A stretch of DNA of 64,000 nucleotides. Origin: Macrostomum lignano. Taxonomy: Eukaryota. The position numbers and the translations under genes were made by a program. The DNA lies in contig NIVC01002667.1 in the NCBI GenBank assembly GCA_002269645.1, forward strand, positions 1-64,000, written 5' to 3'. The first letter of the stretch is position 1. Every line of letters begins with the position of its first letter. Positions 3,834 to 63,960 of the stretch are shown piece by piece. The notes beneath the pieces were generated by a model that did not search any database, was not told the DNA's origin, and worked only from the letters and a program-made list of their open reading frames with translations.

Positions 3834-7664
<3,831 letters not shown>

Positions 7665-18050: not shown

Positions 18051-18284
18051 TAGAATTCAGCAAGTCAGTATTCTCAGTTCCTCAGTTAATGTCAATGCTC
18101 CCACAGCTCTAGCATTTAACGGTCCCGTCTATTTGCATGCTGGTCAGATTCATTGCACCGCCGAGCTCCCCAGCGTCAGAGTGAGTAGACAACAGCCCGA
18201 CAGCACGGAGAGGAGAATCGCAGGACTCCGCCACCGCCTGATGCTCTTAATCAGCAGCAGTGGCAGCCGCCCAGCTCAGCCAGG

Positions 18285-21200
18285 ATGAAGCGGGCTGAAC
18301 CCAGCAGCAGCGGCGGCGGCGGCCCAGCCGCGGAGGAGTCGCTCATGACGGTAGTGCAGGACATGAGCCGCCAATTAGAAGAGAAAGCCGACCGATTAAA
18401 TCTGCGCTCGTCAAGCGTCAGACGAATCATCAAGGAGGTGCTGAGCGATCAGGACGTGGTAAGCATGTTTCGCGAGTACCTCAGCTGCGACAAGCCGCCC
18501 GCTGCGGCCTACGAGCCGAAGCTCACCCGCAGTCAGGTGAAGCGGATCTGCTTGGACTCGGCTGCGGCCGCTTCGTCAGCTTCAGCTGTTGAAGCCAACG
18601 CCGATCGCGAGGACGCCGCCCTCGACGATAACGACAACGACGACAATGACGATGAGGACGACGACGAAGAAGACGACGGAGATTATGTTGTGGCCGAGGA
18701 CGAGGAGGACGACAAAGACGACGAAGAAGAAGACGAAGATGAAGACGATGACGTCACTGTCGCAAATAAGTGCGGCGACAAGGACTTGCCAGCGACACCT
18801 GTCTCCGCTGCCGCCGACGACGACGCCGTCGCCGCCTCTGCGACCTACGCAACTCGTTCGCGCTGTCCGATTCCGGACTTCTCTTGGGAGAAATACGAAG
18901 AGGCCATACTGAAGAGCGACTTCTATTTGGGCGACTTTGCTGTGAGCGTCTCTGGGTCTTTGAGAGGCCTATGTTCAGAACCTAGTGTCCCATCCTGAGG
19001 ATCACCTGACAGGATCAAATAGGCGGTGTCCCATCCTGGGGATCACCTGACAGGATCAAATAGACGGTGTCCCATCCTGGGGATCACCTGACAGGATCAA
19101 ATGTCCAGCTCCAGAATCAGGTGTCTCATCCTGGGGATCACCTGACAGGATTAAATAGGCGGTGTCCCATCCTGAGGATCACCTGACAGGATCAAATAGG
19201 CGGTGTCCCATCCTGGGGATCACCTGACAGGATCAAATAGGCGGTGTCCCATCCTGGAGATCACCTGACAGGATCAAATAGGCGGTGTCCCATCCTGGGG
19301 ATCACCTGACAGGATCAAATAGGCGGTGTCCCATCCTGGAGATCACCTGACAGGATCAAATAGGCGGTGTCCCATCCTGAGGATCACCTGACAGGATCAA
19401 ATAGGCGGTGTCCCATCCTGGAGATCACCTGACAGGATAAAATAGGCGGTGTCCCATCCTGAGGATCACCTGACAGGATCAAATAGGCGGTGTCCCATCC
19501 TGGAGATCACCTGACAGGATCAAATAGACGGTGTCCCATCCTGGGGATCACCTGACAGGATCAAATGTCCAGCTTCAGAATCAGGTGTCCAATCCTGGGG
19601 ATCACCTGACAGGATCAAATAGACGGTGTCCCATCCTGGGGATCACCTGACAGGATCAAATGTCCAGCTCCAGAATCAGGTGTCCCATCCTGGGGATCAC
19701 CTGACATGATCAAATAGGCGGTGTCCCATCCTGGGGATCACCTGACAGGATCAAATAGGCGGTGTCCCATCCTGGGGATCACCTGACAGGATCAAATAGG
19801 CGGTGTCCCATCCTGGGGATCACCTGACAGGATCAAATAGGCGGTGTCCCATCCTGGGGATCACCTGACAGTATCAAATAGGCGGTGTCCCATCCTGGGG
19901 ATCACCTGACAGGATCAAATGTCCAGCTCCAGAATCAGGTGTCCCATCTTAAGGATCATCGCATTTCATCCAGCTCGACGACGTGGACTTGGACGCCGAT
20001 GCAGTGTCGGCTTCGATTCAGCCGTCCAGTCAGTCGCAGACGCAGCAGCAGCAGCCGCCGCCTCTGCTCTCGACGCCGCCGCCAAGCGGCGCGCCGTTGG
20101 ACGACATCGGCGCGGTCAAAGCCGAGGACGCCGCCATCTTTGATGAGGACGACGTGGAGTTTCGTAATTTCCTACGCGACATCTATCTGGACCGCATCGA
20201 GGTGGCCGACCCGCCCAATGAGGCCGAGGAGGACGCCGATTTTAACGTGATGGCCGAGCCGGAGGAGGCGTACCAGGAGGACTTCGTTGAGGATCTGCGC
20301 TACAACCGGGCGTCTAGGATTCCCAAGCGGGAGGTTCGGGATTTGCTTGACGAGATTTGCAGCGACCTGGTGAGCTGGACGCGAACTGAACTTGGGATGG
20401 GGTAGGTGGATTGCTAGTCTAGTCTATTTTAAAAGAATTATAGTGGATTGCTAATCTAGCCAACTTAAAGAAATACTGATTGCTGGGGTTGCTAGTCTAG
20501 CCATTTCTTAGAGAGGTATCATGTATTGCTAGCCTATCCAACTTGTAAGGATACCAGTGGATTGCTAGCCTATCCAACTTGTAAGGATATAACGGATTGC
20601 TAGCCTATCCAACTTGTAAGGATACCAATGGATTGCTAGCCTATCCAACTTGTAAGGATATAATGGATTGCTAGCCTATCCAACTTGTAAGGATATAATG
20701 GATTGCTAGACTATCCAACTTGTAAGGATATAATGGATTGCTAGCCTAGCCGACTTGTAAGGATATAATGGATTGCTAGCCTAGCCAACTTGTAAGGATA
20801 TAATGGATTGCTAGCCTAGCCGACTTGTAAGGATATAATGGATTGCTAGCCTAGCCGACTTGTAAGGATACAATGGATTGCTAGCCTACCTGCGCCACTC
20901 GCACTAGCTCCTCAAGCCTCTCTCATCCCCTCTTCCCCAACAGTTCGACTCGCAGCTGTCCGCCGGCCGCCATCTCCAGCAGCAGGCCGGCGCGTCCTCC
21001 CCGCCCCAGCCGCTGTCCCAGGACGATCAGGAGGAGGCGACAGCCGAACCGGAGTGTTTGCTGCAGCCCTGCGCGGTGGAAGACCTCAGCCAGGAGCAGC
21101 GAGTGGAGCTGAAAAAACAGCTCACAATGTACGTGCAGCTGTTATGCACCATGCGCATCACCTGCCATCAGCAGTCGCCTGAGCTGGCCGACTCGGCTAA

Positions 21201-24200
21201 GGTGCATCTCAACGAATTAAAGCTGCTAGCCGATGCTTACGAAGCCGCTAATCCGGCGAATACTTCGATCCTGCGCGTGGCCAATCTCGATGGCGCCGTT
21301 TCGCTGGCTGACAATTTTGCCGGGCTCAGCGACACCGATCTGCTAGTGTGCTACAGCCGCCCCAGTCGCTCCCTGAGCTCCCGGTCCGACTGTACAGCTG
21401 ATGAATTAGCGGAATCTACTTATCTAATGCCGCCTCAGCTGTGCAACCTGTTCCTGACCTCTTCCGTGTTCCCCTACGCCCAGCTGTTCCCGCCCGGCAT
21501 GTCCGCCTCTGTTTGCCGGTCAAAGCGGACCGTCTTCACGCCTAGCGAGGACCGCCTGCTGCTGCTCGGCCTCACTCAGTTCGGTCATCGAAGAGACGTG
21601 TTCCAACTGATTAGCAAGTACACCATGCCCTGGCGCAGCCAGGTTGCTATCAGCGCCAGGTGTGTCTATTTGAGCAAGCTGCAATCTTTGCTGTTTAGAG
21701 ATTCGCTCTGTCCGGCTCGAGTGCTGACCAGGTGAGAATTATCTTTTATAGGATCAGATATAATCATTGGTAGGACCATTATCAGTTGGATCAATGTCTA
21801 TGGGATCAGGACCTGTGGGATCAGGATCTGTGGGATCAGGACCTGTGGGATCAGGATCTGTGGGATCAGGACCTGTGGGATCAGGATCTGTGGGATCAGG
21901 ATCTGTGGGATCAGGACCTGTGGGATCAGGATCTGTGGGATCAGGATCTGTGGTATCAGGATCTGTGGGATCAGGATCTGTGGGATCAGAATCTGTGGGA
22001 TCAATGTCTATTGGATCAGAATCTGTGGGATCAATGTCTATTGGATCAGAATCTGTGGGATCAGGATCTGTGGGATCAGGATCTGTGGGATCAGGACCTG
22101 TGGGATCAGGATCTGTGGGATCAGGACCTGTGGGATCAGGATCTGTGGGATCAGGATCTGTGGGATCAGGATCTGTGGGATCAGGATCTGTGGTATCAGG
22201 ATCTGTGGGATCAGGATCTGTGGGATCAATGTCTATTGGATCAGAATCTGTGGGATCAGGATCTGTGGGATCAGGATCTGTGGGATCAGGATCTGTGGAA
22301 TCAGGATCTGTGGTATCAGGATCTGTGGGATCAGGCTCAGTGGGATCAATGTCTATGGGATCAGGACCTGTGGGATCAGGATCTGTGGGATCAGGATCTG
22401 TGGGATCAATGTCTATTGGATCGGAATCTGTGGGATCAGGATCTGTGGAATCAGGATCTGTGGGATCAGGATCAGTGGGATCAATGTCTATGGGATCAGA
22501 ATCTGTGGGATCAGAATCTGTGGGATCAATGTCTATGGGATCAGGATCTGTGGGATCAATGTCTATGGGATCAGGATCTGTGGGATCAATGTCTATGGGA
22601 TCAGAATCTGTGGGATCAGAATCTGTGGGATCAGGATCTGTGGGATCAATTTCTATGGGATCAGAATCTGTGGGATCAATTTCTATGGGATCAGAATCTG
22701 TGGGATCAATGTCTATGGGATCAGAATCTATGGGATCAGAATCTGTGGGATCAGGATCTGTGGGATTAATTTCTATGGGATCAGAATCTGTGGGATCAGA
22801 ATCTGTGGGATCAGAATCTGTGGGATCAGAATCTGTGGGATCAATGTCTATGGGATCAGAATCTGTGGAATCAATGTCTATGGGATCAGAATCTGTGGAA
22901 TCAATTTCTATGGGATCAGAATCTGTGGGATCAGAATCTGTGGGATCAGAATCTGTGGGATCAGAATCTGTGGGATCAATGTCTATGGGATCAGAATCTG
23001 TGGGATCAGGATCTGTGGGATCAATGTCTATTGGATCAGAATCTGTGGGATCAGGATCTGTGGTATCAGGATCTGTGTGATCAGGCTCAGTGGGATCAAT
23101 GTCTATGGGATCAGGACCTGTGGGATCAGGATCTGTGGGATCAGGATCTGTGGGATCAATGTCTATTGGATCAGAATCTGTGGGATCAGGATCTGTGGAA
23201 TCAGGATCTGTGGGATCAGGATCAGTGGGATCAATGTCTATGGGATCAGGACCTGTGGGATCAGGATCTGTGGAATCAGGATCTATGGGATCAGAATCTG
23301 TGGGATCAATGTCTATGGGATCAGAATCTATGGGATCAGAATCTGTGGGATCAATTTCTATGGGATCAGAATCTGTGGGATCAATGTCTATGGGATCAGG
23401 ATCTGTGGGATCAATGTCTATGGAATACCTTTGAGATCAAAATGAGTCACTGGGGATCAAAATAATCCACGCCAAATCAAACCCGAACAGATCCCTAATT
23501 ATCAGCTGCCTACGCCGGCGACAGCACCTGCTCTCAGCCGCATCCCAGCCCCAAGCGGGCAAGTCCGCGGCCCCAAGCTCACCGCCGCCCGACCCTAAGC
23601 AGTCTGAGCCGGACTCAATCGATTTGAACTTTTGCCAATCCAACTGGATCAACTCCGTGCCGATTCTAACCGACTGCGTGCTGGACCGACCAGCCGACTG
23701 GTGCCACCTACCGCAGCTGTTCCGCCAGCACCTGCTGCTTGAGCGGCCCCACCTTCGCGGCCAGCTGCTGAAACCAACGGAGCCGAACCCGCTGGAGCGG
23801 GACACCGCCAATGATCAGGCTAACAAGCTGTTCAAACGCTGCCGGATACTGTTTAAAGATATGCGACACGAACGGCTGCTAGGCGTGCGACTGCTCTGGC
23901 GCGATCCTCAGATGGCCGCGGTTGTTCCGGCGTCGTTGAATCCGCCGCCGCAGTCGCTGCCGCGCCGACGCCGCGGTCCGAAGAGGCGGCGGGTTTCCGG
24001 CCACCCTATGACCATTCGGCAGGCCCTGCTGGCCAGCGGTCGCCGGCCGCACGACCGCTCGCCGACTCGGCTGCTGATGCCACGGATTTCGTCCGTGTCG
24101 GGCTCGCAGCAGCCGCCAGCCCAGCTGCCCTCCCCGCCCATCTTAGACACCGCTTCTGCAGAGTGCGCCAATCAGGTTAAGAAGAAAGTCAAAGACTACT

Positions 24201-24432
24201 TGCTGAGTAGAATGCGGATGAAGTCGGGCAATTTCTCTTCATCTGACATGCCGCCGCAGCCTCCGCCACAGCCTCCACCGCCGCCGCCGCCACCGCCTGC
24301 CGTCATGGCGAAATCCTGCCGCTTAATTCTACCCAAGCCTCCGTCTGTGCAGGCGTCTACAGCCGACACTTGTCAAATTGCATCCGATTTGATCCTGTCC
24401 GAGCTGCGCTCCCGGCGCAGGGATCAGCAGGT

Positions 24433-24465
<33 letters not shown>

Positions 24466-27400
24466 TATGCCAGCCCTAGTTCTAGCCCTGCAGTCGTCGC
24501 AAGCGTCATCGGCGTCTTCATCGTTGTTGTCGTTTCTATCAGGTCTGCAGGCGACCAACTGCATGGAGACGTCGATTAGTCCGCCGGCCGGCTGCAACGC
24601 CGACCTTCCGACCGACGACGCTATTGCCATGGCGGCGCCAGCCGCGGCGGCTGACGACTATCAGATTCAGTCGCCGTTGCCGCCGCCTCCAGCGTCGATC
24701 GCTGCTGCAGAATTATCCGTTGACACTAACCAGCCGCCAGCGACACAACCAAAAATGGAATTGGACGATGATGCAGTTATAGACGATAAAGACGCTGTCG
24801 ATTTATCGCCGGAGACCATACCGACGCTTAGTTGCTTGCCGTATCTGTCCGAGTTTTTGCAGTCTAACACCTTTAGAGAGCTGCGGCGCGGTCGGTAAGT
24901 ATCCAGGGTGAGGAACGCTTCATAGGGATCAGGATTTGGGATCACAATCTGGGACCAGAATCCTGGGGATCAGAATTTGGGATCACAATCTAGGATCAGA
25001 ATCCTGGGATCAGGATTTGGGATCACAATCTGGGACCAGAATCCTGGGGATCAGAATTTGGGATCACAATCTAGGATCAGAATCCTGGAGATCAGAATCC
25101 TGGGGATCAGAATCCTGGGGATCAGAATCCTGGGGATCAGAATCCTGGGGATCAGAATCCTGAGGATCAGAATCCTGGGGATCAGAATCCTGGGGATCAG
25201 AATCCTGGGGATCAGAATCCTGGGGATCAGAATCCTGGGGATCAGAATCCTGGGGATCAGAATCCTGGGGATCAGAATCCTGGGGATCAGAATCCTAGGG
25301 ATCTTCTCGATCAGAATCCTGGGGATCAGAATCCTGGGGATCAGAATCCTAGGGATCTTCTCGATCAGAATCCTGGGGATCAGAATCCTGGGGATCAGAA
25401 TCCTGGGGATCAGAATCCTAGGGATCTTCTCGATCAGAATCGAGAAGATCAGAACCCAGGGACCAAGATCCATCCTACACATTAGGATGCAAGTGATCAG
25501 AATCCATTTGATAAGGATTTTACTGTTCTCATTACCTCAGAAGTTAGCATCATAATTCAGAGAAATAATGCATGAAGGCTATTGCTTTTAATCCTATGAA
25601 TAAAAATCCCTAACACGCGTTCATCTTCTCAGCTGGAAACCGGGCCGCAGCGGCCGCCTGGACCAGGAGAATCTGGATCAGCTGGTCACTGACGACCTGT
25701 GCGAATCCGGCGGCGCCGATGACGACCGCGACATCGAATTTGCGTCCGCCTTCCTGCGTTGCCTGCGCACAGAGCTGAGCTCGACGCCGGAGGCCTACTG
25801 GGAAGCGCTGCAGACAATTGGCCGGCTGGCGGAGACTCCCGACTTGGACCAGGTAGGGCGGCTGCTTGTGTTTGGTTTAACAAATCGCCCTTCTATAGCT
25901 TAGAAATTCGCCATTCAGTAGCTTAGAGATTCGCCATTCAGTAGCTTAGAGAATCGCCATTCAGTAGCCTAAAGAATCGCCATTCAGTAGCCTAGAGAAT
26001 CGCCATTCAGTAGCTTAGAGATTCGCCATTCAGTAGCTTAAAGAATCGCCATTCAGTAGCCTAAAGAATCGCCATTCAGTAGCCTAAAGAATCGCCATTC
26101 AGTAGCTTAGAGAATCGCCATTCAGTAGCCTAAAGAATCGCCATTCAGCAGCCTAAAGAATCGCCATTCAGCAGCTTAGAGATTCGCCATTCCGTTGCTT
26201 AGAGACTGGACTGAGGCTACTGAGATCGCCACTCCGCACACCCCTCCCTACTCAGGTGAGCTTCTACCGCTCCGCGCTGTCTGCTCTGCCCGCCCACGCC
26301 GGCTGCTCCCGCAGCATGCTGGCCGGTTTCGTCTCCGTGGAAACGGCGCTCCTCGTTGACGCCCTGCCGGACCACCTGAGCGTGTGGCGCAACCGCTGCC
26401 TTGTCCGCAAGATTCACCGCCAACTGCGGGAGCAGCGCTGCAAATCGCCCATTGTGCTGCACAGATTTGAAAAGTCCCTGGCCCGTTGGATGTCCACGGC
26501 CAGTTCAATCCCCGACGATAACCGACTAGCCAGGCTGATTGACGATTTGGACACTACGTTCAAGTACTTTCCCTACTGCTTGTCCGAGACTCTGTCCCAG
26601 TTTCCCGAGGTGCCCAACTTTGCCGAGTCCAGGGACGCGTTCGAGTATGTCGACTTGACGTCTTCGCAGCCTTCTGCCGCGACCACGGCATCGGCGGCGC
26701 CGTCCACTGAGGATTTCGCTCGGCGTCCCCGCGACAGCGTATTCGAATGCCTGCCGGAGAGCCTCGGCCTGCACGAGGATCGCTCGTTGAGCTGTTCGTG
26801 CGCCTGTCACGTGACTACTCCGACTAATCTAGCCGAGGCGCAGAAGTCCAAGGAGTCCGGTAGTTCGGCCGCGACCATTCCGGGTGAACGTCGGGTACTT
26901 CGCCACTGCGACAACTGCGCCCTGGTGTCCAGGCATCACATGCTGCTAGTTGAAAAGCTGGAGTCCCGCCGGCTGCGACACTATGACTACGCGTGCGTGC
27001 ACTTTCCGCCGGAGTTCCGTCCCAGATCGGATCTGCCACCGGCGCCTCAAGTGAGCTACACGAACTCTTGATCGTGTTCTTCCACCTCTGTGACCTCCAG
27101 GGATCTCGTAGCCTCATGACACCTTGGTCTCATGACCCCTTGACCTCATGACCCCTTGACCTCATGAGCCCTGACCTCATGACCCCTTGGTCTCATGACC
27201 CCTTGACCTCATGACCCCTTGACCTCATAACCCCTTGGTCTCATGAGCCCTGACCTCATGACCCCTTGTGCTCATGACCGATTGACATCATGACCCCTTG
27301 ACCTCATGACCCCTTGGTCTCATGAGCCTTGACCTCATGACCCCTTGACCTCTTGAGCCCTTGACCGCATGACCACTTGACCCCATGACCTACCTGTGTG

Positions 27401-28289
27401 ACGTCAAGTGGACGTCATGACTTTTCTCTCTATGACCTCGAGGCGTCGTCATAACCCCTTGCCTCCGGGCTCTCTATGACCTCGAAGTGATCTCGGGTCA
27501 TCTGTTCATCTTATAAATTATTTCATGACCCTTTAATCCAAAGTATGAGTAGATCTATGATCCTATGCACGTGTATAACGATGTCCGCTTCTTTAGGTGG
27601 ACGCCGAGGTGGTGGTCCCCGCCTACCGGCCGGCTTCTTCGATCCAGCAGCGACGCCAGCAACCCACTGGAGGCGTCGGCAGCGGCAGCAGCGGCGGTGG
27701 TGGCGGCGCTAGCGGCAGAGACAACACCGGAAGCGGCGGCGGCGTCGGCGGTGGCTGCGGCGGCCAGCCTCGGCATCGTCAGCAGCATCGAACCGCCGAG
27801 TCGGCCGCCCTACTCGAGGAGACCTTCGCCGTCACCATCCGGGCCGCGGCGCTGTACGCGGACGCCGAGGAAGACGACGACGAGATTTCCGCCGCCGGCG
27901 CTTCTTCCTCTGTTGACGCCGGCGCCGCCAACGCCGTCGTTGAGGTCGAATCCTCGACGACAACCCGGTGCGGCCCGGCGTCCGCCATGACACCGCACGA
28001 ATACGAGCTGGCCGAGCGTCGGCGGCCTCTGTTCGAACCGTCGGCGTCGAGGCGGCGCCTGGCTGACCGAGCCTGGACGGAGGCGGAGGACCGGGCGATC
28101 CTTCAGCACTGCCAGGCCAACGGCTTCTCCTCCGGCGCTTTCCGCTGCCTGAGCGAGCGCCTGCTGGACAATCGTACGGTTGAAAGCGTCCGGCAGCGCT
28201 TCCGCTTGCTGATGCGCTCCTACCTGGCCGCCCAGGGCGCCGAGTACTCCACCTCCGATATGGACGAATTGAGCGACTGCGACGAGTGA
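18285..28289 (+). CDS. GON4L: GON-4-like transcriptional co-regulator (PAH and C-terminal Myb/SANT domains), about 1645 aa, 7 coding exons
   Basis: Exons 18285-18941, 19974-20369, 20944-21731, 23506-24894, 25633-25852, 26256-27050 and 27597-28289; GT-AG, phase-consistent (4938 nt). GON4L-like motifs: [59 protein letters not shown]-like [12 protein letters not shown], and [27 protein letters not shown]. Confidence 0.85.
18985..19950. repeat. 41-bp minisatellite in GON4L intron 1
   Basis: Unit GTGTCCCATCCTGGGGATCACCTGACAGGATCAAATAGGCG, with a recurring variant linker. Confidence 0.95.
20525..20888. repeat. 35-bp minisatellite in GON4L intron 2
   Basis: Unit GGATTGCTAGCCTATCCAACTTGTAAGGATATAAT. 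Confidence 0.93.
21775..23420. repeat. 15-bp minisatellite in GON4L intron 3
   Basis: Unit GGGATCAGGATCTGT and variants, about 110 copies. Confidence 0.95.
24925..25440. repeat. 15-bp minisatellite in GON4L intron 4
   Basis: Unit TGGGGATCAGAATCC and variants. Confidence 0.93.
25900..26195. repeat. 23-bp minisatellite in GON4L intron 5
   Basis: Unit GAATCGCCATTCAGTAGCCTAAA. Confidence 0.93.
27110..27390. repeat. About 16-bp minisatellite in GON4L intron 6
   Basis: Unit GACCTCATGACCCCTT. Confidence 0.9.
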
Positions 28290-34822: not shown

Positions 34823-35888
34823 GTACTCTAATATTCTTAGTTGCTAAAAACTTAATATAATTATGCATTAATATTTTTGAGCTATAGTTTTATTTTTATT
34901 TAAAATGAGAATAATTCATATTATTTTAAGACATGTTTTGTAAGAAAGTTTTCTTAGGAAACTAACTTGCAAAGTCAAATGACTTTTTAAGGAGAAATTT
35001 CAGTGTACCAACTACCATTATTTTTTCTGGCATAATATATTGCACCATTTGGACTATAGACTCTGAGCTAAAAGAGCAAAGTATTAATATATACTTTAAA
35101 AAAAAGTCATGTTATGTTGCTAAAAATTGCTATTTCCATTAAAAAAGGCCACACAGATATGGGTCCTATAAAACTCTTTTATCTTAAGGCACTATGCTCT
35201 ATGGGCTTCTAGATAGGAAGCCACCAATGCTATATACCTCATTGCTATTTAGGTAAAAGATTTTGCAAGCTATTCTAATGAGGTGCAATATGCCTAAGGT
35301 AATTGGCAAAATGCCTATCTGGAAAAGTATATATAGAACTAACTGGCTAACAAGGCATTTAGAGTTAATAATATAGTTATAGTTACTCCTGCCATTTACC
35401 CAAAGTTATGTTAATTTTGCTTAGGTTTCTTTCATAGGTAAGTTGCATTTTTGGTTAATGTAAAAGTCCCATGGCTGATATAAATCAGGGGGTTTGCGCA
35501 TGTATACTGATTACCATATGCTCATAGCATGCAATGTTGTCACAATATTCACATTAAGTTCAGCTAATGGCTAGTCAAAATAAATTCATATTAATGAGTG
35601 ATTGCCTTGATAGTTTGTTAATTAAAAGGGATACAACCTAGGGACACCACATGGTGGAAATATGTATGTATATAAATATGTATACATATGTATGTATGAA
35701 GGCAACAAAATATCAACTTGTTAGTTAGTCAACCTGGTCTATTTCATCACTTGATTATGTATGGATACCTTAAATTAGGTCATTCTGCATAAGTTATGAT
35801 TTATAGACTAAAGAAGTTTCTGTAAAAGTCATTCAACATTCGTTCTCCATTCACACTGCAGTGCTAGTCCACCCCACACAACAACAAA

Positions 35889-36881
35889 ATGAACATCTTT
35901 CGCCTCATTGGCGACATGAGCCATCTGGCTGCTATTCTGATCTTGCTGGCCAAAATCTGGCAAACCAGATCTGTCAGCGGGATATCGGGCAAATCTCAAG
36001 TGCTGTTTGGTCTGGTGTTTCTAACTCGCTATCTGGATTTGTTCACCAGCTTTGTGTCCATCTACAACAGCGTTATGAAGGTGAGATTAGAGCAGTCAGG
36101 TGTGATCCTTAGCTCACTGCTGCCCCCTCCCTCAGCTCACTGTTATCCTCTCCTTCAGATCACTGCTATTCCCTCCTTCAGGTCACTGCTATCCCCTCCT
36201 TCAGGTCACTGTTATCCCCTCCTTCAGGTCACTGCTATCCCCTTCAGGTCACTGCTATCCCCTCCTTCAGGTCACTGCTATCCCCTCCCTCAGCTCACTG
36301 CTGCCCCCTCCCTCAGCTCACTGCTGCCCCCTCCCTCAGCTCACTGTTATCCACTCCTTCAGGTCACTGCAATCCCATTTTGGCTAAAATTCAAGAACTC
36401 AACCTTTTCTTACGCACCAAAATATCCCAAACAGATAGTGTTCATCTTCGCCACCTGGCTAACCGTGTCCCTAATCTATTGGAAATTCCGTTCCACTTAC
36501 GACGGCAATCACGACACGTTTCGAGCCGAACTACTAGTAGTAGTCTCCGCCGGCCTATCCGTGCTATTGAACCACCAGCTGGCCCCGCTGGAGGTGCTGT
36601 GGACTTTCAGCATCTACCTGGAGTCCGTGGCCATCCTGCCGCAGCTGTTTCTCATTAGCAAAACTGGGTCGGCAGACACCATCACGTCTCACTACCTGTT
36701 CGGCCTGGGCTCCTACCGGGCTTTCTACATACTGAACTGGATCTACCGCTACATGGTTGAGGACTTCTTCGATCCTATCGCCGTGGTGGCTGGCTGCGTT
36801 CAGACCATCCTGTATGCCGACTTCTTCTATATCTACGTGACCAAAGTGGTTCGCGGAAAATCCACTCAGATTGAAGTTTAG
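35889..36881 (+). CDS. KDELR: ER lumen protein-retaining (KDEL) receptor, 212 aa, 2 coding exons
   Basis: Exons 35889-36080 and 36435-36881. Motifs [44 protein letters not shown] and [10 protein letters not shown]. The spliced length equals the canonical 212 aa. Confidence 0.97.
36105..36370. repeat. About 23-bp minisatellite in the KDELR intron
   Basis: Unit TCACTGCTATCCCCTCCTTCAGG. Confidence 0.9.
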
Positions 36882-43528: not shown

Positions 43529-50485
<6,957 letters not shown>

Positions 50486-50809
50486 TCGAGCAGCGGTGTA
50501 TCTTTCTTGGAAAAGCGAACCGGTCAAGCTAGGATTTCTCAATGCGGGTATTGCAACAAGAAATTTATTCCCAGGATTTTTTGCGGCTTTGGTAGCCATT
50601 CCGACCCCCCGCGGCCCGCCTCATCCTTAGGGAAAAAATTGCTCAGCCAATGAAAAGCAAGCGAGTTCTCGGCCGACAGCCAATGGGAGTTTGAGAGCGG
50701 GAGGGGATTATTCAAATTTGGGAAAGTTTGATTCCTGTCCTAAATAGAGTTCCAGCGAAACTGTGAGACTTGACTGGGGTGGTTTCAAATGGATAGAATG
50801 GCAATGGCG

Positions 50810-52924: not shown

Positions 52925-53545
52925 TTGCCATCTCATCACCCAGCCTCCATCTCATCACCCAGCCTCCTCCATCTCATCACCCAGCCTCCTCCATCTCATC
53001 ACACAGCCTCCATCTCATCACCCAGCCTCCTCCTCCATCTCATCACCCAGCCTCCTCCATCTCATCACACAGCCTCCATCTCATCACCCAGCCTCCTCCA
53101 TCTCATCACCCAGCCTACTCCATCTCATCACACAGCCTCCATCTCATCACCCAGCCTCCTCCATCTCATCACCCAGCCTCCTCCATCTCATCACACAGCC
53201 TCCATCTCATCACCCAGCCTCCTCCATCTCATCACCCAGCCTCCTCCATCTCATCACACAGCCTCCATCTCATCACCCAGCCTCCTCCATCTCATCACCC
53301 AGCCTCCTCCATCTCATCACCCAGCCTCCTCCATCTCATCACCCAGCCTCCTCCATCTCATCACACAGCCTCCTCCATCTCATCACCCAGCCTCCTCCAT
53401 CTTATCACCCAGCCTCCTCCATCTCATCACACAGCCTCCATCTCATCACCCAGCCTCCTCCATCTCATCACCCAGCCTCCTCCATCTCATCACACAGCCT
53501 CCATCTCATCACCCAGCCTCCTCCATCTCATCACCCAGCCTCCGC
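52925..53545. repeat. About 19-22-bp minisatellite overlapping the stop codon of the Cys-loop gene
   Basis: Unit CCATCTCATCACCCAGCCTCCT. Confidence 0.93.
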
Positions 53546-56500
53546 CATCATCCGGGCGCGATCCCTCGCCGCCCAGGCCAGATAGACTGTCCAATAGGCT
53601 GCCGCGGCCGCCGCGAAAGTCGACGCGAAGGCGACAAAAAAGACGACATCGGCGCACCGCCGCAGCCGCCGCTTCCTGTCGGCGTTGGGCGGCACCGCCG
53701 GGCCGATGTAGCGCCTGACGGCTCGGGCCCAGGCCGTCTCGGTGCTGCGGGCCAGCTGACTGCCGCTCAGCAGCTCCCGGCCGCTGCCGCCGCCGCCGCC
53801 GCTCTCAGTCGACAAGGATGCAGTCTCTTTCCCAGCCGCGTTGGAGAGCAGAGCGGCCACGGCGAGGGCCAGGGCTCGAGTCAGGCCGGCAAAGCAAAAT
53901 AGCAGGCACAGATAGAACCAGGTGTCCAAGGCTCTGCTGCCAGCTCCATAGGGTATCACCTGGTGACAATTTTGGGTCGGCTGATGATTGTGTCAGTTAC
54001 TTATGACGGTTACCTCAGGACAGGTTACCTCAGGACAGGTTACCTCAGGACAGGTTACCTCAGGACAGGTTACCTCAGGACAGGTTACCTCAGGACAGGT
54101 TACCTCAGGACAGGTTACCTCAGGACAGGTTACCTCAGGACAGGTTACCTCAGGACAGGTTACCTCAGGACAGGTTACCTCAGGACAGGTTACCTCAGGA
54201 CAGGTTACCTCAGGACAGGTTACCTCAGGACAGGTTACCTCAGGACAGGTTACCTCAGGACAGGTTACCTCAGGACAGGTTACCTCAGGACAGGTTACCT
54301 CAGGACAGGTTACCTCAGGACAGGTTACCTCAGGACAGGTTACCTCAGGACAGGTTACCTCAGGACAGGTTACCTCAGGACAGGTTACCTCAGGACAGGT
54401 TACCTCAGGACAGGTTACCTCAGGACAGGTTACCTCAGGACAGGTTACCTCAGGACAGGTTACCTCAGGACAGGTTACCTCAGGACAGGTTACCTCAGGA
54501 CAGGTTACCTCAGGACAGGTTACCTCAGGACAGGTTACCTCAGGACAGGTTACCTCAGGACAGGCTACCTCAGGACAGGTTACCTCAGGACAGGTTACCT
54601 CAGGACAGGTTACCTCAGGACAGGTTACCTCAGGACAGGTTACCTCAGGACAGGTTACCTCAGGACAGGTTACCTCAGGACAGGTTACCTCAGGACAGGT
54701 TACCTCAGGACAGGTTACCTCAGGACAGGTTACCTCAGGACAGGTTACCTCAGGACAGGTTACCTCAGGACAGGTTACCTCAGGACATGTTACCTCAGAA
54801 CAGGTTACCTCAGGACAGGTTACCTCAGGACAGGTTACCTCAGGACAGGTTACCTCAGGACAGGTTACCTCAGGACAGGTTACCTCAGGACAGGTTACCT
54901 AAGGACAGGTTACCTCAGGACAGGTTACCTCAGGACAGGTTACCTCAGAACAGGTTACCTCAGGACAGGTTACCTCAGGACAGGTTACCTCAGGACAGGT
55001 TACCTAAGGACAGGTTACCTCAGGACAGGTTACCTCAGGACAGGTTACCTCAGGACAGGTTACCTCAGAACAGGTTACCTCAGGACAGGTTACCTCAGGA
55101 CAGGTTACCTCAGGACAGGTTACCTAAGGACAGGTTACCTCAGGACAGGTTACCTCAGGACAGGTTACCTCAGAACAGGTTACCTCAGGACAGGTTACCT
55201 CAGGACAGGTTACCTCAGAACAGGTTACCTCAGGACAGGTTACCTAAGGACAGGTTACCTCAGGACAGGTTACCTCAGGACAGGTTACCTCAGAACAGGT
55301 TACCTCAGGACAGGTTACCTCAGGACAGGTTACCTCAGGACAGGTTACCTCAGGACAGGTTACCTCAGGACAGGTTACCTAAGGACAGGTTACCTCAGGA
55401 CAGGTTACCTCAGGACAGGTTACCTCAGAACAGGTTACCTCAGGACAGGTTACCTCAGGACAGGTTACCTCAGAACAGGTTACCTCAGGACAGGTTACCC
55501 AAGGACAGGTTACCTCAGGACAGGTTACCTCAGGACAGGTTACCTCAGAACAGGTTACCTCAGGACAGGTTACCTCAGGACAGGTTACCTCAGGACAGGT
55601 TACCCCAAGACTCATTGCCTAGGCCTTATTGAAGTCTTTCATTTAAAAAAAATAGCTAAGACAAAGAAATTTATTTTAATATTCAAGAAAACGTAAAGTA
55701 AACACCGGATTTTAATTAACTGTCGTCCCTTATTGGCAACTGCTCACCTCCCCTGCATCGAATTTCATCCCGCTGTGGGAGCAGATCTTGGCTCAACTTT
55801 TTGTCTAATCTGGCCAATTAAAAACTCTGTTTTAAGGAAGTTCCAGCTTGTAAACAAGTCGATCTCGAACCCGTGACTCGCTGTTTCGTCTTCAGGTTTT
55901 TCTACGAAGAACTTAAAGTTCATTCGCAATGTACAAGGAAGTCTGTTGCGATTGAAAATGCAGAAATTAGCAGATCTCCTAACTCATATTAAGTTCTGAC
56001 CAGAGACAGACTAATCGACAATTTTTACGCAGTATTGCTTGGATTTTAATACCCACCATATTTTAATAATCCCACCCACCATAGTAGGATAATCTCACCC
56101 ACTCTAGTTGGATAATCTCACCCAATATAGTTGGATAATCTCACCCAATATAGTTGGATAATCTCACCCAATATAGTTGGATAATCTCACCCAATATATC
56201 TAATAGTTGGATAATTTCACCCACCCTAGTTCGATAATCTCAACCAATATTGTTGGATAATCTCACCTAATATAGTTGGATAATCTCACCCAATATAGTT
56301 GGATAATCTCACCCATTATAGTTGGACAATCTCACCCAATATAGTTGGATAATCTCACCCATTATAGTTGGACAAACTCACCCAATATAGTTGGATAATC
56401 TCACCCAATATAGTTGGATAATCTCACCCAATATAGTTGGATAATCTCACCCATTATAGTTGGACAATCTCACCCAATATAGTTGGATAATCTCACCCAA

Positions 56501-59500
56501 TATAGTTGGATAATCTCACCCAATATAGTTGGATAATCTCACCCAATATAGTTGGATAATCTCACCCATTATAGTTGGACAATCTCACCCAATATAGTTG
56601 GATAATCTCACCCAATATAGTTGGATAATCTCACCCATTATAGTTGGATAATCTCACCCAATATAGTTGGATAATCTCACCCATTATAGTTGGATAATCT
56701 CACACACCCTTATAACCATGAGCTGAGCTGAACTGTGCGACCAATTCACCCAACAGACCCAAACAATAACTCAATATGCACCTAATAAGTACTCAAAATC
56801 AAAGTTCAAATTTGCTTTTAAACCGTTTCCATTTTAGGTAAAATGACAGATTCGTCCCGTTTTGAATAAAAAATCATTCTTCACAAGAGCAATCGACAAC
56901 TATAGTAAAACAATTTTAATAAAAAGCAGAGGCGCTTAAACAAAAAGGCGTTTGTTTCCCGAGAATTTGCTATTGAATGGCGGGTGAAAATATTCTATAT
57001 TTGGCCATACTGCTGGCTTGCCGGGCTGGAGGGTGAGAGGGAGAGAAGGAAGAGGCTGCAGATGGGACCGTGTCGATCCGTGCGGTCTAAAAATAGCGAC
57101 AAACCCTTCCACTTTTCTGCTCAGGCAGAAATTTCACTGAGACTGAAATTTAATCCAATTTCTCAGACTCTGGGTGAGGACTGGCTTAAGATTATTCCGG
57201 AGAGAAGTAACTGCAACTCTTCTGGTGAAAATCGGTCAGACACTCAGGTGAGACTGGGTCAGACACTCAGGTGAGACTGGGTCAGACACTCAGGTGAGAC
57301 TGGGTCAGACACTCAGGTGAGAGTGGGTCAGACACTCAGGTGAGAATGGGTCAGACACTCAGGTGAGTCTGGGTCAGACACTCAGGTGAGTCTGGGTCAG
57401 ACACTCAGGTGAGTCTGGGTCAGACACTCAGGTGAGTCTGGGTCAGACACTCAGGTGAGTCTGGGTCAGACACTCAGGTGAGTCTGGGTCAGACACTCAG
57501 GTGAGTCTGGGTCAGACACTCAGGTGAGTCTGGGTCAGACACTCAGGTGAGTCTGGGTCAGACACTCAGGTGAGTCTGGGTCAGACACTCAGGTGAGTCT
57601 GGGTCAGACACTCAGGTGAGAATCGGTGAGACACTCAGGTGAGAATGGGTCAGACACTCAGGTGAGAATCAGTGAGACACTCAGGTGAGAATCAGTGAGG
57701 CACTCAGGTGAGAATCAGTGAGACACTCAGGTGAGAATCAGTGAGACACTCAGGTGAGAATCAGTGAGACACTCAGGTGAGAATCAGTGAGACACTCAGG
57801 TGAGAATCAGTGAGACTCTCAGGTGAGAATCAGTGAGACACTCAGGTGAGAATCAGTGAGACTCTCAGGTGAGAATCAGTGAGACTCTCAGGTGAGAATC
57901 AGTGAGACTCTCAGGTGAGAATCGGAGACAGAGCCAAGCCACACTCACCAGGTTCACAATGGTCCACAAGAACATTTGCCCAGCCAGACACACCAGAGGC
58001 ACGGCTGTCTGCACAAGGGCGCTGCCGACTCCCAGCCTGACTGACAGCCACACAGTCAGCACCATAGCAGAAGTTGGGCCATAGACGGTGGTTACGTAAT
58101 AGGCTGCGTCTCGCTTCAGCAGCACCCACAGCACTGACTGACGCAGCTTCAGGCCGTTCAGCGCCCATTCTGTGCCAACACGGTCTCCAAGGCCAACCGC
58201 TCGGCTGCCGTTGCTTAGCAACCAACGACGCTGTGCAATAATAGCAGTGTCATTGCCAATCGGGTTTGGTATTCTCAAATTGCTCATGTTTACAGCGCAG
58301 AGCTCGGTGTCCAGGGGGAACAGATGCAGCTGTGGTCGGAGGGGGCAGCTGGATTGTGGAATTCAGTGCGTATAGTGGGGTACCCGCTTCTTTACCTGTC
58401 TCACCCATTGTCTGCCTCTCTCCCTCTCCCTCTCCCTGTCTCCTCTCCTCTCTCCCTCTCTCTCCCCCTCTCTCTCTGTCTCCCTCTCATATCCCTCTCT
58501 CCCTCTCTCTCCCTCTCTCCCTCTCTCCCTCTCTCCCTCTCTCCCTCTCTCCCTCTCTCCCTCTCATATCCCTCTCTCCCTCTCTCCCTCTCTCCCTCTC
58601 TCCCTCTCTCCCTCTCTCCCTCTCTCCCTCTCTCCCTCTCTCCCTCTCTCCCTCTCTCCCTCTCTCCCTCTCTCCCTCTCTCCCTCTCTCCCTCTCTCCC
58701 TCTCTCCCTCTCTCCCTCTCTCCCTCTCTCCCTCTCTCCCTCTCTCCCTCTCTCCCTCTCTCCCTCTCTCCCTCTCTCCCTCTCTCCCTCTCTCCCTGTC
58801 CCTCTCTCCCTGTCTCCTCTCCTCTCTCCCTCTCTCTCGCTCTCCCTCTCTTTCTCTCCCTCTCTCTCTGTCTCCCTCTCATATCCCTCTCTCCCTCTCT
58901 CCCTCTCTCCCTCTCTCCTCGTCTCCCTCTCATCTACATCTCTCTCTCTTTCTCTCTCTTTCTCCCTCTCTCTCTGTCTCCCTCTCATATCCCTCTCTCC
59001 CTTTGTCCCTCTCTCCCTGCCTCCCCCTCATTCCTCTCGCTTCCTTCTCATTCTCTTTCCTCTCACCTCTCCCATCCCACCCCTCTCCCTCTCTCACATC
59101 CAACTTCTCTCTCCCCCAACGGCCCCTTTCCCACACTCGGTTCCCTCACATTCAGGCGGCAGGCCACGGTGAGGCTGACAACTCCGGACCAGCTCGAACC
59201 GCCGGCTGCAGCAGCTGTCCAGCCTAGCCTCAGGCTAACGTTGATCGCGGTGAAATTCACTTTGTCCAAGGACTCCAGGCTAGCGACAATGCTGCCGCTG
59301 CTGACGAGGTTAACATGAAATTGCAATTATTTGAAGCAGGATTTCATAAGAAATTTATTTTCCTTAAAGTGCTCTGCTTGGCTATAAAAATACATAAATG
59401 AAGGTCGCATACAGCGATTGTCTCAGGATAGGGATATCCTTAGGCAGATTCTGACAGACCATGGATTTCAGCCCATCTTAGCTCTCTTCTCTCCTACTCT

Positions 59501-60544
59501 GCCCTCTCTTACCCTCCCCACTCTTACTCTCCCCCCTCTTACCCTCCCCTCTTACCCTCCCCTCTTAACCTCCCCTCTCTTACCCTCCCCTCTTACCCTC
59601 CCCTCTTAACCTCCCCTCTCTTACCCTCCCCTCTTACCCTCCCCTCTTAACCTCCCCTCTCTTACCCTCCCCTCTTACCCTCCCCTCTTACCCTCCCCTC
59701 TCTTACCCTCCCCTCTCTTACTCTCCCCTCTCTTACTCTCCCCTCTCTTACCCTCCCCTCTCTTACTCTCCCCTCTCTTACCCTCCCCTCTCTTACTCTC
59801 CCCTCTCTTACCCTCCCCTCTCTTATTCTCCCCTCTCTTACTCTCCCCTCTCTTACCCTCCCCTCTCTTACTCTCCCCTCTCTTACCCTCCCCTCTCTTA
59901 CCCTCCCCTCTCTTACTCTCCCCTCTCTTACCCTCCCCTCTTACCCTCCCCTCTTACCCTCCCCTCTTAACCTCCCCTCTCTTACCCTCCCCTCTCTTAC
60001 CCTCCCCTCTCTTACTCTCCCCTCTCTTACTCTCCCCTCTCTTACCCTCCCCTCTCTTACTCTCCCCTCTCTTACTCTCCCCTCTCTTACCCTCCCCTCT
60101 CTTACCCTCCCCTCTCTTACTCTCCCCTCTCTTACTCTCCCCTCTCTTACTCTCCCCTCTCTTACCCTCCCCTCTCTTACTCTCCCCTCTCTTACCCCCC
60201 CTCTTACCCTCCCCTCTTACCCTCCCCTCTTACCCTCCCCTCTTAACCTCCCCTCTCTTACTCTCCCCTCTCTTACCCTCCCCTCTCTTACTCTCCCCTC
60301 TCTTACTCTCCCCTCTCTTACTCTCCCCTCTTTTACTCTCCCCTCTCTTACCCTCCCCTCTCTTACCCTCCCCCCTCGGTCACACTCAGTGGTCACTGGA
60401 CTTTCTATTCTTATAAAAGTGCACACTCTCTGCCTTGGGGGGGGGTTGACTCTCCTTAATGACTTACTTTTCACCTGCAGAGCGGGCCACAGCAGCCGCA
60501 GCAAGCAGTTGCAGAAAAATTACCGCAGCCTGGGCGAGTCCCAT
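53531..60544 (-). CDS. Divergent pentameric ligand-gated ion channel (Cys-loop) subunit, GABA/glycine-like topology, about 345 aa, 4 coding exons
   Basis: Exons (minus strand) 60544-60468 (signal peptide), 59300-59150, 58329-57949 and 53959-53531; phase-consistent. The spliced Cys-loop [15 protein letters not shown] has C-x13-C spacing. Also present: pre-M1/M1 [21 protein letters not shown]2-M3 IP...[14 protein letters not shown] and M4 ..AYWTVYL. Family call is strong; the exon 1-2 model is less certain. Confidence 0.75.
53995..55610. repeat. 15-bp minisatellite (CAGGTTACCTCAGGA)n, about 107 copies
   Basis: Direct inspection; lies in intron 3 of the Cys-loop gene. Confidence 0.98.
56085..56710. 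repeat. 23-bp minisatellite
   Basis: Unit ATAGTTGGATAATCTCACCCAAT. Confidence 0.95.
57235..57920. repeat. 23-bp minisatellite
   Basis: Unit CACTCAGGTGAGTCTGGGTCAGA, changing to CACTCAGGTGAGAATCAGTGAGA. Confidence 0.95.
58420..59100. repeat. Polypyrimidine (CT-rich) low-complexity / short tandem repeat
   Basis: Direct inspection; lies in intron 2 of the Cys-loop gene. Confidence 0.95.
59490..60375. repeat. 15-17-bp minisatellite (CTTACCCTCCCCTCT)n
   Basis: Direct inspection; lies in intron 1 of the Cys-loop gene. Confidence 0.95.
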
Positions 60545-61314
60545 TGCATGCAGTGGCTGAGCGAGTGGCAGAAGCTGGCAGTTATCAATGCTAGTAATAT
60601 ATACATGTAAAGTGCAGACACTTGAATGAGCCTGACGAATTGCCTAAATAAGGCATGGCCAGAGGAGGGGCATAAGCAGCAGGGACTCTGCCCCATCCTC
60701 AGCCTCCTATACTCAAGCTGTTGAGCTCCTATTGGATCTCCTAGAGGTGGATCAGGGGATTCTGGGGCTGACTACTCAGCCCCCCGATTGGTCCGGACAA
60801 AACAGCCAGTGGGTATTCGGTCATATTTTTAAACTGCAGGACAGAATGGGAATCCAAAACCCATCTGCTCAGAGAGAGATTACCGGACAGCAGGGGAGGA
60901 TTAGCGGCCGCCGCTGCAGATGCGATGCGAAATTCGATATCACTAAATTGCCAGGTGTAGTGACAAAGGCTTTGTGAAGACTGGGGTGGTTCAATTATTA
61001 AAGCTACGAGGTATAACAGAAACATGAAATCTGAGTAAACACTGAGTTTATTTGACTCTTTGCTCAAAGAATGTTCCGGAATTGTCCTGATGTAGGATTT
61101 CTGTGAAGAGCGCATTGGCTGCGGGCTCTTGGCGGCAGGTCTATTTTTAAACAGGCGATACAACAAGAACAGAACAGCTTTAAGCAATTCAGCAGCAGAA
61201 TTATTTATGAACAATTTTAAACGTGCTTAAACATACATCAGGGTCAATCGTTTGTGCGGCTTGACGGCAAAATTTGAAATTTCACAACAGGATATTCTAG
61301 TCTCTCAAACTGAA

Positions 61315-63305
61315 TTATCCCCAGATTCCCAAACCGGACATCCCCAGATTCCCAAACCGGACATCCCCAGATTCCCAAACCGGACATACCAGAATACCAA
61401 ACCGGACATACCAGAATTCGAAACCGGACATCCCCAGATTCCCAAACCGGACATCCCCAGATTCCCAAACCGGATATCCCCAGATTCCCAAACCGGACAT
61501 CCCCAGGTTCCCAAACCGGACATCCCCAGATTCCCAAACCGGATATCCCCAGATTCCCAAACCGGACATCCCCAGATTCCCAAACCGGACATCCCCAGAT
61601 TCCCAAACCGGACATCCCAGATTTCCAAACCGGATATCCCCAGATTCCCAAACCGGACATCCCCAGGTTCCCAAACCGGACATCCCCAGATTCCCAAACC
61701 GGACATACCAGAATACCAAACCGGACATACCAGAATTCGAAACCGGACATCCCCAGATTCCCAAACCGGACATCCCCAGATTCCCAAACCGGATATCCCC
61801 AGATTCCCAAACCGGACATCCCCAGGTTCCCAAACCGGACATCCCCAGATTCCCAAACCGGATATCCCCAGATTCCCAAACCGGACATCCCCAGATTCCC
61901 AAACCGGACATCCCCAGATTCCCAAACCGGACATCCCAGATTTCCAAACCGGATATCCCAGATTCCCAAACCGGATATCCCCAGATTCCCAAACCGGACA
62001 TCCCCAGGTTCCCAAACCGGACATCCCCAGATTCCCAAACCGGACATCCCCAGATTCCCAAACCGGATATCCCCAGATTCCCAAACCGGACATCCCCAGA
62101 TTCCCAAACCGGACATCCCCAGGTTCCCAAACCGGACATCCCAGATTCCCAAACCGGACATCCCCAGATTTCCAAACCGGACATCCCCAGATTCCCAAAC
62201 CGGACATCCCCAGATTCCCAAACCGGATATCCCCAGATTCCCAAACCGGACATCCCAGATTCCCAAACCGGACATCCCCAGATTCCCAAACCGGACATCC
62301 CAGATTCCCAAACCGGACATCCCCAGATTCCCAAACCGGATATCCCCAGATTCCCAAACCGGACATCCCAGATTCCCAAACCGGATATCCCCAGATTCCC
62401 AAACCGGACATCCCCAGATTCCCAAACCGGATATCCCCAGATTCCCAAACCGGACATCCCCAGATTCCCAAACCGGACATCCCCAGATTCCCAAACCGGA
62501 CATCCCCAGGTTCCCAAACCGGACATCCCCAGATTCCCAAACCGGACATCCCCAGATTTCCAAACCGGACATCCCCAGATTCCCATACCGGATATCCCAG
62601 ATTCCCAAACCGGACATCCCCAGATTCCCAAACCGGACATCCCCAGGTTCCCAAACCGGACATCCCAGATTCCCAAACCGGGCATCCCCAGATTCCCAAA
62701 CCGGACATCCCAGATTCCCAAACCGGACATCCCCAGATTCCCAAACCGGATATCCCCAGATTCCCAAACCGGACATCCCAGATTCCCAAACCGGATATCC
62801 CCAGATTCCCAAACCGGACATCCCAGATTCCCAAACCGGATATCCTCAGATTCCCAAACCGGACATCCCCAGATTCCCAAACCGGACATCCCCAGATTCC
62901 CAAACCGGACATCCCCAGGTTCCCAAACCGGACATCCCCAGATTCCCAAACCGGACATCCCCAGATTTCCAAACCGGACATCCCCAGATTCCCATACCGG
63001 ATATCCCAGATTCCCAAACCGGACATCCCCAGATTCCCAAACCGGACATCCCCAGGTTCCCAAACCGGACATCCCAGATTCCCAAACCGGGCATCCCCAG
63101 ATTCCCATACCAGATATCCCAGATTTCCAAACCGGACATCCCCAGATTCCCATACCGGATATCCAAGATTCCCAAACGGGACATCCCCAGATTCCCAAAC
63201 CGGACATCCCCAGATTCCCAAAAAGGATATCCCCAGATTCACAAACTGGACATCCCAGATTCCCAAAAAGGATATCCCCAGATTCACAAACTGGACATCC
63301 CAGAT
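61315..63305. repeat. 21-23-bp minisatellite, about 2 kb
   Basis: Unit CCCCAGATTCCCAAACCGGACAT; source of the spurious 500-770 aa ORFs. Confidence 0.97.
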
Positions 63306-63345: not shown

Positions 63346-63497
63346 TCACTCCATATTCGAATAGCGAGTCGCCTTGCCGAGCCGGGTGACCAGGTAGCCG
63401 GCCACGATGATCACCATGCTGACCCCGATGACCCCGGCGATGGCCAGGGCGACGATGCCAGTGCGGTGCCGCCTGGAGTCCGCCTCGCACAGAAAGG
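63346..63497 (-). CDS. Last coding exon of a LAMP-family-like type I membrane protein (gene continues beyond the window)
   Basis: Acceptor CGCTCGCAG at 63498-63499. Translation xFLCEADSRRHRTGIVALAIAGVIGVSMVIIVAGYLVTRLGKATRYSNME* shows a juxtamembrane C-x-x-D, a TM helix and a short tail with a Y-x-x-hydrophobic sorting motif. Confidence 0.55.
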
Positions 63498-63519
63498 CTG
63501 CGAGCGGGGAGCGGGCGTC

Positions 63520-63960
63520 TGTATGAGATCTTGTGAGATCTATGTGAGATCTATGTAGGATCTATATGAGATCTATGTAAGATCTATGTGACATTTATGT
63601 GAGATCTATGTCAGATCTATATGAGATCTATATGAGATCTCTGTAGGATCTATATTAGATCTATGTAAGATCTATGTGAAATCTATGTGAGATCTATGTG
63701 AGATCTATCTGAGATCTATATGGGATCTCTGTGAGATCTATGTATGATCTCTGTGAGATCTATGTGAGATATATAAGAGATCTATATGAGATCTCTATGA
63801 GTATATGTGTGATCTATTTGATATATATGTGAGATCTTGTGAGATCTATGGGAGATCTAAATGAGATCTATGTAAGATCTATGTGAGATCTATGTGAGAT
63901 CTAAATGAGATCTATGTAAGATCTAAATGAGATCTATGTGAGATCTATATGATAAAATTG
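63520..63960. repeat. About 11-bp degenerate minisatellite (GAGATCTATGT)n
   Basis: Direct inspection; lies in the intron upstream of the LAMP-like exon. Confidence 0.9.

Follow-up and report, generated by a model that had tools for sequence, protein, structure and literature searches.

Anion-selective Cys-loop receptors are marked by an FPxD Cys-loop, a Y-x-P...W motif in the membrane helix M1, a Leu-Pro or Ile-Pro step between M2 and M3 and an A-(L/I)-D-x-W motif in M3. The same features occur in the product of a minus-strand gene of the flatworm Macrostomum lignano (53531-60544), located in a stretch of 64,000 nucleotides (assembly GCA_002269645.1, contig NIVC01002667.1, positions 1 to 64,000; the window) that we analysed. 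Compared with the anion-selective receptors, however, this product has ~88 ectodomain residues fewer and no P-A-R motif, and it carries Gln, Pro and Ala at positions 0', 4' and 9' of M2. From its sequence, we interpret the locus, with a probability of about 0.5, as a gene of the Cys-loop (pentameric ligand-gated ion channel) superfamily that is intact, restricted to this lineage and strongly derived. Descent from the anion-selective GABA/Gly/GluCl-like branch is part of this interpretation and is proposed with the same reservation.

Human dup-alpha7, the product of CHRFAM7A, resembles the M. lignano product in being lineage-specific and in having lost the N-terminal ligand-binding part while keeping the Cys-loop and the membrane helices. 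Without its N-terminal binding region, dup-alpha7 is a dominant-negative or modulatory partner that damps alpha7 currents (PMC8998457). It results from a recent partial duplication and is near-identical to alpha7, whereas the M. lignano gene has no close parent. Moreover, neither a signal peptide nor the beta1-beta2 loop is present in dup-alpha7, whereas the M. lignano product has a signal peptide, a beta1-beta2-like segment and a deletion that is partly internal. By this comparison, we regard dup-alpha7 as the closest functional analogue, not as a homologue.

GLIC, ELIC and the eukaryotic 'Pro-loop' receptors retain all ten strands of the beta-sandwich, and their 9' residue is as a rule hydrophobic. 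The M. lignano product differs from them in that its cysteines are kept, three to four strands are lost and the 9' residue is Ala. These receptors demonstrate that a pentameric channel can work without the N-terminal helix and without the canonical transmitter pocket, and very divergent members are known beyond the classical receptor families (PMC4795631).

Family membership and ectodomain length

A phmmer search against all PDB chains returned GlyR beta as the best match (E 9e-10); dozens of further matches were to GABA-A, GlyR and GluCl chains. The best matches (GlyR beta and alpha, GABA-A gamma2, beta and pi, and GluCl alpha; E 9e-10 to 1e-4) were all anion-selective receptors, yet the query lacks their P-A-R motif. 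GABA-A gamma2, beta and pi each gave one colinear alignment over residues 66-232, from beta6 to M3; with gamma2, residues 68-231 aligned at E ~1e-6. The GlyR chains matched chiefly over M1-M3, and GlyR beta aligned without gaps over residues 146-240. A home-built profile placed residues 66-229 on beta6 through M3 with no rearrangement. It was made from six sequences, three of which were confirmed as real; GABA-A beta3 and GluCl alpha were 100% identical to PDB chains. A search started from GlyR alpha1 returned vertebrate GlyR alpha sequences only, a set too narrow for a deep profile.

Identity to the reference receptors was 19-26%, and ~22-26% to the anion-selective ones. The Cys-loop is C73-x13-C87, with the C-x13-C spacing given by an initial annotation of this DNA, and its FPLD fits the [FY]-P-x-D pattern. 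Judged by colinear homology and motifs, the product is a member of the Cys-loop superfamily, though an outlier.

The ectodomain is markedly shortened. From G24, the predicted mature N-terminus, to the first cysteine there are 49 residues, compared with 137 in GlyR alpha1, 135 in GABA-A beta3, 129 in GluCl alpha and, for an unverified sequence, 127 in nAChR alpha7. Trp53 and Cys73 are separated by 19 residues, compared with 69 for Trp68-Cys138 of GlyR alpha1. The shortfall of ~88 residues comprises ~38 at the N-terminus (the alpha1 helix and the start of beta1) and ~50 internal residues. Between the second cysteine and the pre-M1 Arg, in contrast, ~62 residues (vs ~66 in GlyR alpha1) make up a near-normal length. 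Overall, the ectodomain has ~58% of the normal length and ~40% of the ligand-binding domain is gone, so that there is no complete ten-strand ectodomain with binding loops A-F. The initial annotation had put the loss at about half of the extracellular domain, with ~55 residues missing at an internal junction. The shortening and the internal loss were both borne out, the former with more than half of the length left and the latter with a count nearer to 50. The N-terminal alpha1 helix is indeed absent, the remaining shortfall being N-terminal.

The internal loss lies in exon 2 (59300-59150, 151 nt; this and all other parts of the gene are on the minus strand), between a beta1-beta2-like stretch and beta6, in unique sequence. 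The exon encodes residues 26-76, which comprise the beta1-beta2-like stretch, a short Ala/Gly linker, beta6 and the first cysteine of the Cys-loop. Residues 30-53 (59219-59290) are the candidate for beta1, the following loop and beta2 (loop D). They are followed by the junction TAAAAGG (residues 54-60; 59198-59218), which replaces ~50 canonical residues, namely the beta2-beta3 loop, beta3, beta4 with loop A, beta5 and beta5'. The beta6 strand (residues 61-72; 59162-59197) runs into the Cys-loop and pairs with NVLYSIRITLTLA in GlyR alpha1 and with LSITLS in GlyR beta. Since the shortfall lies inside one continuous exon, missing exons cannot account for it. No other receptor-like open reading frame (ORF) was found in the 64-kb window by profile and tblastn searches of all six frames (ORFs of >=15 amino acids). 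One M1-like ORF, RRRLGYFILFFY (1364-1441, minus), was rejected as AT-rich non-coding sequence matching at chance level (E 0.5-2.5). We conclude that the short ectodomain is a real observation and not an artefact of exon finding.

The identity of the stretch upstream of beta6 is the weakest link in our interpretation. Profiles of anion-selective ectodomains placed residues 31-53 on the end of beta1, the beta1-beta2 loop and beta2, with scores that were matched by 1-32 of 2000 composition-preserving shuffles. MAFFT gave the identical placement, and the Arg and Trp of the conserved L-R-x-x-W motif are present. We also considered residues 47-65 (LRLGW...GGSSWSG) as a loop E/beta5' strand. The HMMER alignment of beta6 reaches back just to residue 59, which fits a beta1-beta2 segment further upstream, and the loop E/beta5' assignment was therefore not adopted for residues 30-53. 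Segment GGSSWSG prolongs the beta6 alignment (NGNVLYS in GlyR alpha1), and the linker is reduced to TAAAA only when GGSSWSG is taken as the start of beta6, as in the alignment with GlyR alpha1. The initial annotation had described a beta2/loop D-like strand joined by TAAAA to beta6 within one 151-nt exon. The single exon stands, the beta2 label is weak and the five-residue linker holds on that condition. Beta1-beta2 is the best available reading of this stretch and is probably correct, given the alignments.

Binding loops, membrane helices and a possible architecture

Loop A and most of loop E fall within the deleted segment. At the position of loop B the sequence is MSNLRIP, which contains no aromatic residue, and one Trp (W131) is close to loop C, so that an earlier statement that loop B and loop C aromatics are not evident applies to loop B and has to be qualified for loop C.

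The gapless alignment of M1-M3 with GlyR beta defines the pore positions. M2 extends from Q183 (0') to L203 (20') and has Leu at -2', Val at -1', Gln at 0', Ala at 2', Pro at 4', Val at 6', Ala at 9' (A192; 57982-57984), Phe at 13', Thr at 16', Asn at 19', Leu at 20' and Pro at 23'. There is no P-A-R motif, no Glu at -1' and no charged ring. Neither a Leu or Phe gate at 9' nor a motif for charge selectivity, be it P-A-R or G-E-K/R, was found; among family members, the 9' residue is Leu in 75% and Phe in 13% (PMC4795631).

The four membrane helices are recognizable. Hydropathy peaks span residues 163-207 (merged windows that cover most of M1 and M2), 216-245 and 304-328, with M1 itself at residues 153-175. 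Pro in M1, Pro between M2 and M3, A-x-D-x-W in M3 and a C-terminal M4 are all present, the YW of M4 having been identified by eye. The landmarks retained thus include both cysteines, FPLD, the pre-M1 KR, Y-G-P...W in M1, the M2-M3 Pro, ALDTW and the YW of M4. The initial annotation had likewise listed the signal peptide, the M1 Pro and Trp, M3 and M4 as intact, and had given M2 the same 0', 4' and 9' residues without P-A-R; hydropathy, motifs and the GlyR beta alignment agree with it. All five N-x-S/T sequons of the protein fall within the 126-residue ectodomain, where 1.5 would be expected (36 of 5000 shuffles reach five); two of them, N41 and N46, are in the beta1-beta2 candidate.

The inner sheet of the receptor fold has beta2 and beta6 side by side, running antiparallel on the complementary face. 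Because of this adjacency, a short beta2-TAAAAGG-beta6 hairpin would amount to a clean excision of beta3-beta5'. It would leave a mini-sandwich of ~7 strands in which every element that contacts the membrane domain is retained. The parts kept (signal peptide, beta1-beta2-like hairpin, beta6, disulphide Cys-loop with FPLD, beta7-beta10, pre-M1 Arg and helix landmarks) are those required for entry into the secretory pathway, for folding and for coupling of the ectodomain to the membrane domain. The parts lost are the N-terminal helix, the segment from the beta2-beta3 loop through beta5' (with loop A and most of loop E) and the loop B aromatic.

Since the canonical binding loops are absent, the canonical agonist pocket cannot form. 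Without such a pocket, and with an M2 that has neither a 9' Leu gate nor a charge-selectivity ring, the product is most likely not a classical transmitter-gated channel. It could assemble with other subunits as a modulatory, non-binding partner, or be a channel that is gated, or leaks, by other means. From the absent binding loops, we infer a possible accessory or ligand-independent role.

Gene model, database record and surroundings

The gene model extends from an ATG at 60544 to a TGA at 53531-53533. Its four exons join into a coding sequence of 1038 nt with 345 open codons; the span, open frame and start and stop coordinates of the initial annotation were right. GT-AG borders all three introns, and six of the six splice sites are canonical. 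A stop-free run of 345 codons has a probability of ~4e-5 in random sequence of equal composition and was obtained in one of 20000 shuffles. The GC content of the exons is 56-69%, compared with 38-41% in the unique parts of introns 1 and 3.

Exon 1 (60544-60468, 77 nt) encodes the signal-peptide-like segment and supplies two nucleotides of the following codon. Its product is a typical signal peptide, with a mean hydropathy of 2.0 (window 1-25). It ends at the donor AAAA/GTAAGT (the slash marks the splice junction), the sole donor that closes the frame. The more obvious and nearer donor G/GTGAAA, 7 nt before it, was rejected; it yields a coding sequence of 1031 nt, which is out of frame. The start codon context is GCAATGG, with A at -3 and G at +4. 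A TATA-like TATATAT (60597-60603) lies 59 nt upstream of the ATG and is, by its sequence, a possible core promoter.

Exon 3 (58329-57949, 381 nt) encodes residues 77-203, with the second half of the Cys-loop, the beta7-beta10 region, the pre-M1 KRD, M1 and M2. Exon 4 (53959-53531, 429 nt) encodes residues 204-345 and the TGA. It comprises the M2-M3 loop VIPYGAGSR, M3 (ALDTWFYL...), an intracellular loop of ~62 amino acids, M4 (residues 306-334, with the YW motif) and a tail of 11 amino acids. The last four codons (AEAG) and the TGA (53531-53545) are situated in the first unit of a 22-nt minisatellite (52928-53549), and the C-terminus of the receptor may have been remodelled by this repeat.

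Intron 1 (59301-60467, 1167 nt) is mostly a 15-nt minisatellite (59489-60377) and contains no coding-like ORF. Intron 2 (58330-59149, 820 nt) includes a CT-rich 8-nt repeat (58411-59095), is in phase 0 and interrupts the Cys-loop. Intron 3 (53960-57948, 3989 nt), at the boundary between M2 and the M2-M3 loop, carries minisatellites at 54008-55604, 56066-56703 and 57224-57922. All three introns and the upstream flank are thus occupied by long, near-perfect minisatellites (periods of 8, 15 and 23 nt; <=106 copies); in the flank, 61317-63305 is a pure 23-nt array.

Word-index searches, one with the entire protein and one after removal of low-complexity sequence, found a single relative among ~5.8 billion proteins, the M. 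lignano entry A0A1I8JQ25. It is 99-100% identical across exon 3 and much of exon 4 and shares the TIVNL/VIP junction at intron 3. An exhaustive HMMER scan with exon 3 as the query yielded nothing else credible; two multi-stretch matches to this exon, P0002 and P0003, were judged spurious from the result table alone. A0A1I8JQ25 was modelled on an older assembly, and its intracellular loop contains single-base indels that are bridged by apparent micro-introns. Although named 'LIM zinc-binding domain-containing protein', it combines receptor exons 3-4 with the first LIM exon of the neighbouring gene in one chimeric model. The earlier description of the gene as an orphan is consistent with these results, the sole relative being a model of the same gene. 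The search for relatives with the same deletion, which that description had called for, returned only this entry, which starts past the region concerned. Nor was a close intact paralogue or a full-length sister copy found in the databases, which argues against a fresh duplicate caught just after its deletion. In the literature, we found no account of the gene or of any receptor with an internally deleted ectodomain; a census of flatworm receptors chose its candidates by membrane-helix count and the F/YPxD motif (PMC6881066).

Across the window, GC-rich exons stand amid AT-rich unique sequence and very many minisatellites. A LIM-homeobox gene (43532-50620, minus) follows the receptor gene in the same orientation, at a distance of ~2.9 kb, with LIM exons at 50246-50620 and 46342-46932 and the homeodomain at 44513-44794, all minus. 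On the 5' side, a stop-terminated ORF (63349-63561, minus) encodes GIVALAIAGVIGVSMVIIVAGYLV, a stretch that resembles a membrane helix, with a short, basic tail. Possibly an upstream gene ends here, in which case its last exon would bound the receptor gene. Farther away, a non-LTR retrotransposon (4260-7861, minus) has long ORFs for endonuclease, reverse transcriptase and RNase H (Pfam E 6e-30, 7e-22 and 6e-14). The first coding exon of a KDEL (endoplasmic reticulum lumen protein retaining) receptor is found at 35868-36110 (plus; Pfam E 4e-11), and its ORF continues as a Pro/Ser-rich repeat. Several long GC-rich ORFs (269, 275, 487 and 304 amino acids) at 18189-28286 (plus) probably represent one or more uncharacterised flatworm genes; the 487- and 304-residue ORFs, the two that were tested, had no Pfam match.

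Alternative readings and implications

A number of results count against an intact receptor gene. Neur_chan_LBD (PF02931) scored 14.2 bits with the full protein and 16.4 bits with the ectodomain alone (cut-off 26), and Neur_chan_memb (PF02932) gave no match up to E 10, either with the full protein or with membrane-domain fragments. The comparison with these profiles, which the initial annotation had proposed as a check, was unfavourable for both domains, and the LBD match is confined to profile positions 115-145 (beta6 and the Cys-loop). Searches of Pfam and PDB gave nothing significant for residues 24-65, and the absolute profile scores of the N-terminal stretch are near 0 bits. A pore helix would not usually carry Pro at 4', as M2 does here. 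In exon 4, at 68% GC, further frames are open as well, and its open frame is of weak value. The exact 345-residue product is absent from public protein collections, which also hold no transcript-derived protein for the gene, and the protein-database searches found no orthologue. Finally, A0A1I8JQ25 begins at Met91, past the Cys-loop, and its frame continues across the 3' minisatellite and enters the LIM-homeobox gene.

In a rival reading, the locus is a young pseudogene, that is, a divergent receptor duplicate with a ~150-nt in-frame deletion in an ectodomain exon and an invasion by the 3' minisatellite, no longer under selection and not yet interrupted by stops. M. lignano is rich in duplicated genes. 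Minisatellites occupy all introns and both flanks of the gene, whose stop codon is in the first unit of an array. The residues of the pore and the binding site are degenerate, the databases hold no transcript-derived protein and the second known copy, A0A1I8JQ25, has single-base indels in the intracellular loop. However, the 345 codons contain no stop and no frameshift (random P ~4e-5), and none of the six splice sites is broken. The two cysteines, FPLD, the M1 Pro, the M2-M3 Pro, ALDxW and YW have been retained despite low identity, a pattern that needs long-term constraint. The ectodomain is enriched in glycosylation sequons, and the databases hold no intact full-length sister copy. We therefore consider a pseudogene unlikely.

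We also considered that residues 24-60 are not beta1-beta2 and that homology starts at beta6, as in CHRFAM7A, a new exon 1 and the 5' part of exon 2 having provided a signal peptide and filler. Pfam and PDB are blank for residues 24-65, and the HMMER alignments start at residues 59-67. Smith-Waterman alignment with GlyR alpha1 paired INVSLRLGW with VNIFLRQQW, at a score that 219 of 500 shuffles equalled and that is thus at chance level. In contrast, three methods agreed on a colinear beta1-beta2 position for residues 31-53, the profile score was seldom reached by shuffled sequences (1-32 of 2000) and the Arg and Trp of L-R-x-x-W are in place. An unrelated leader appears improbable on this evidence.

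An assembly or gene-model artefact, in which full ectodomain exons were lost by repeat collapse or lie beyond the window and the signal-peptide exon is a chance ORF, is suggested by the dense, collapse-prone minisatellites, by the window end 3.4 kb upstream of the ATG and by an exon 1 model based on sequence alone, but is very improbable given that the beta2-like/beta6 junction is in unique, non-repetitive sequence of one continuous exon, that exon 1 has the GCAATGG context, a hydrophobic core, an in-phase GTAAGT donor and a TATA-like motif at -59, that six-frame profile and tblastn scans of the window detected no further receptor-like ORF and that 61317-63305 is a pure 23-nt array.

An intact, derived receptor gene remains our preferred interpretation. 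In its most specific form, which we put forward tentatively and with considerable doubt, the product would be a miniaturised subunit, expressed in Macrostomum, in which a beta2-beta6 hairpin takes the place of beta3-beta5'. Its glycosylated ectodomain of ~125 residues and seven strands would be coupled to a four-helix membrane domain, and the subunit would be either ligand-independent or otherwise gated (9' Ala, no charge rings) or an obligatory non-binding partner.

Should the gene instead be a decaying copy, it would simply be a further gene lost in a flatworm genome rich in repeats and duplications, and its main use would be as a warning that the public model A0A1I8JQ25 joins two genes. If a miniaturised subunit is confirmed, it would mark the minimal ectodomain that the receptor fold tolerates. 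Expressed and folded, the product would be a natural experiment in how far the ectodomain of a Cys-loop receptor can be cut down, with the agonist-binding half gone and the beta1-beta2 loop, Cys-loop, pre-M1 segment and M2-M3 loop still in place. It would then bear on the engineering of minimal receptors, on the assembly of non-binding subunits and on the role of the 9' gate.

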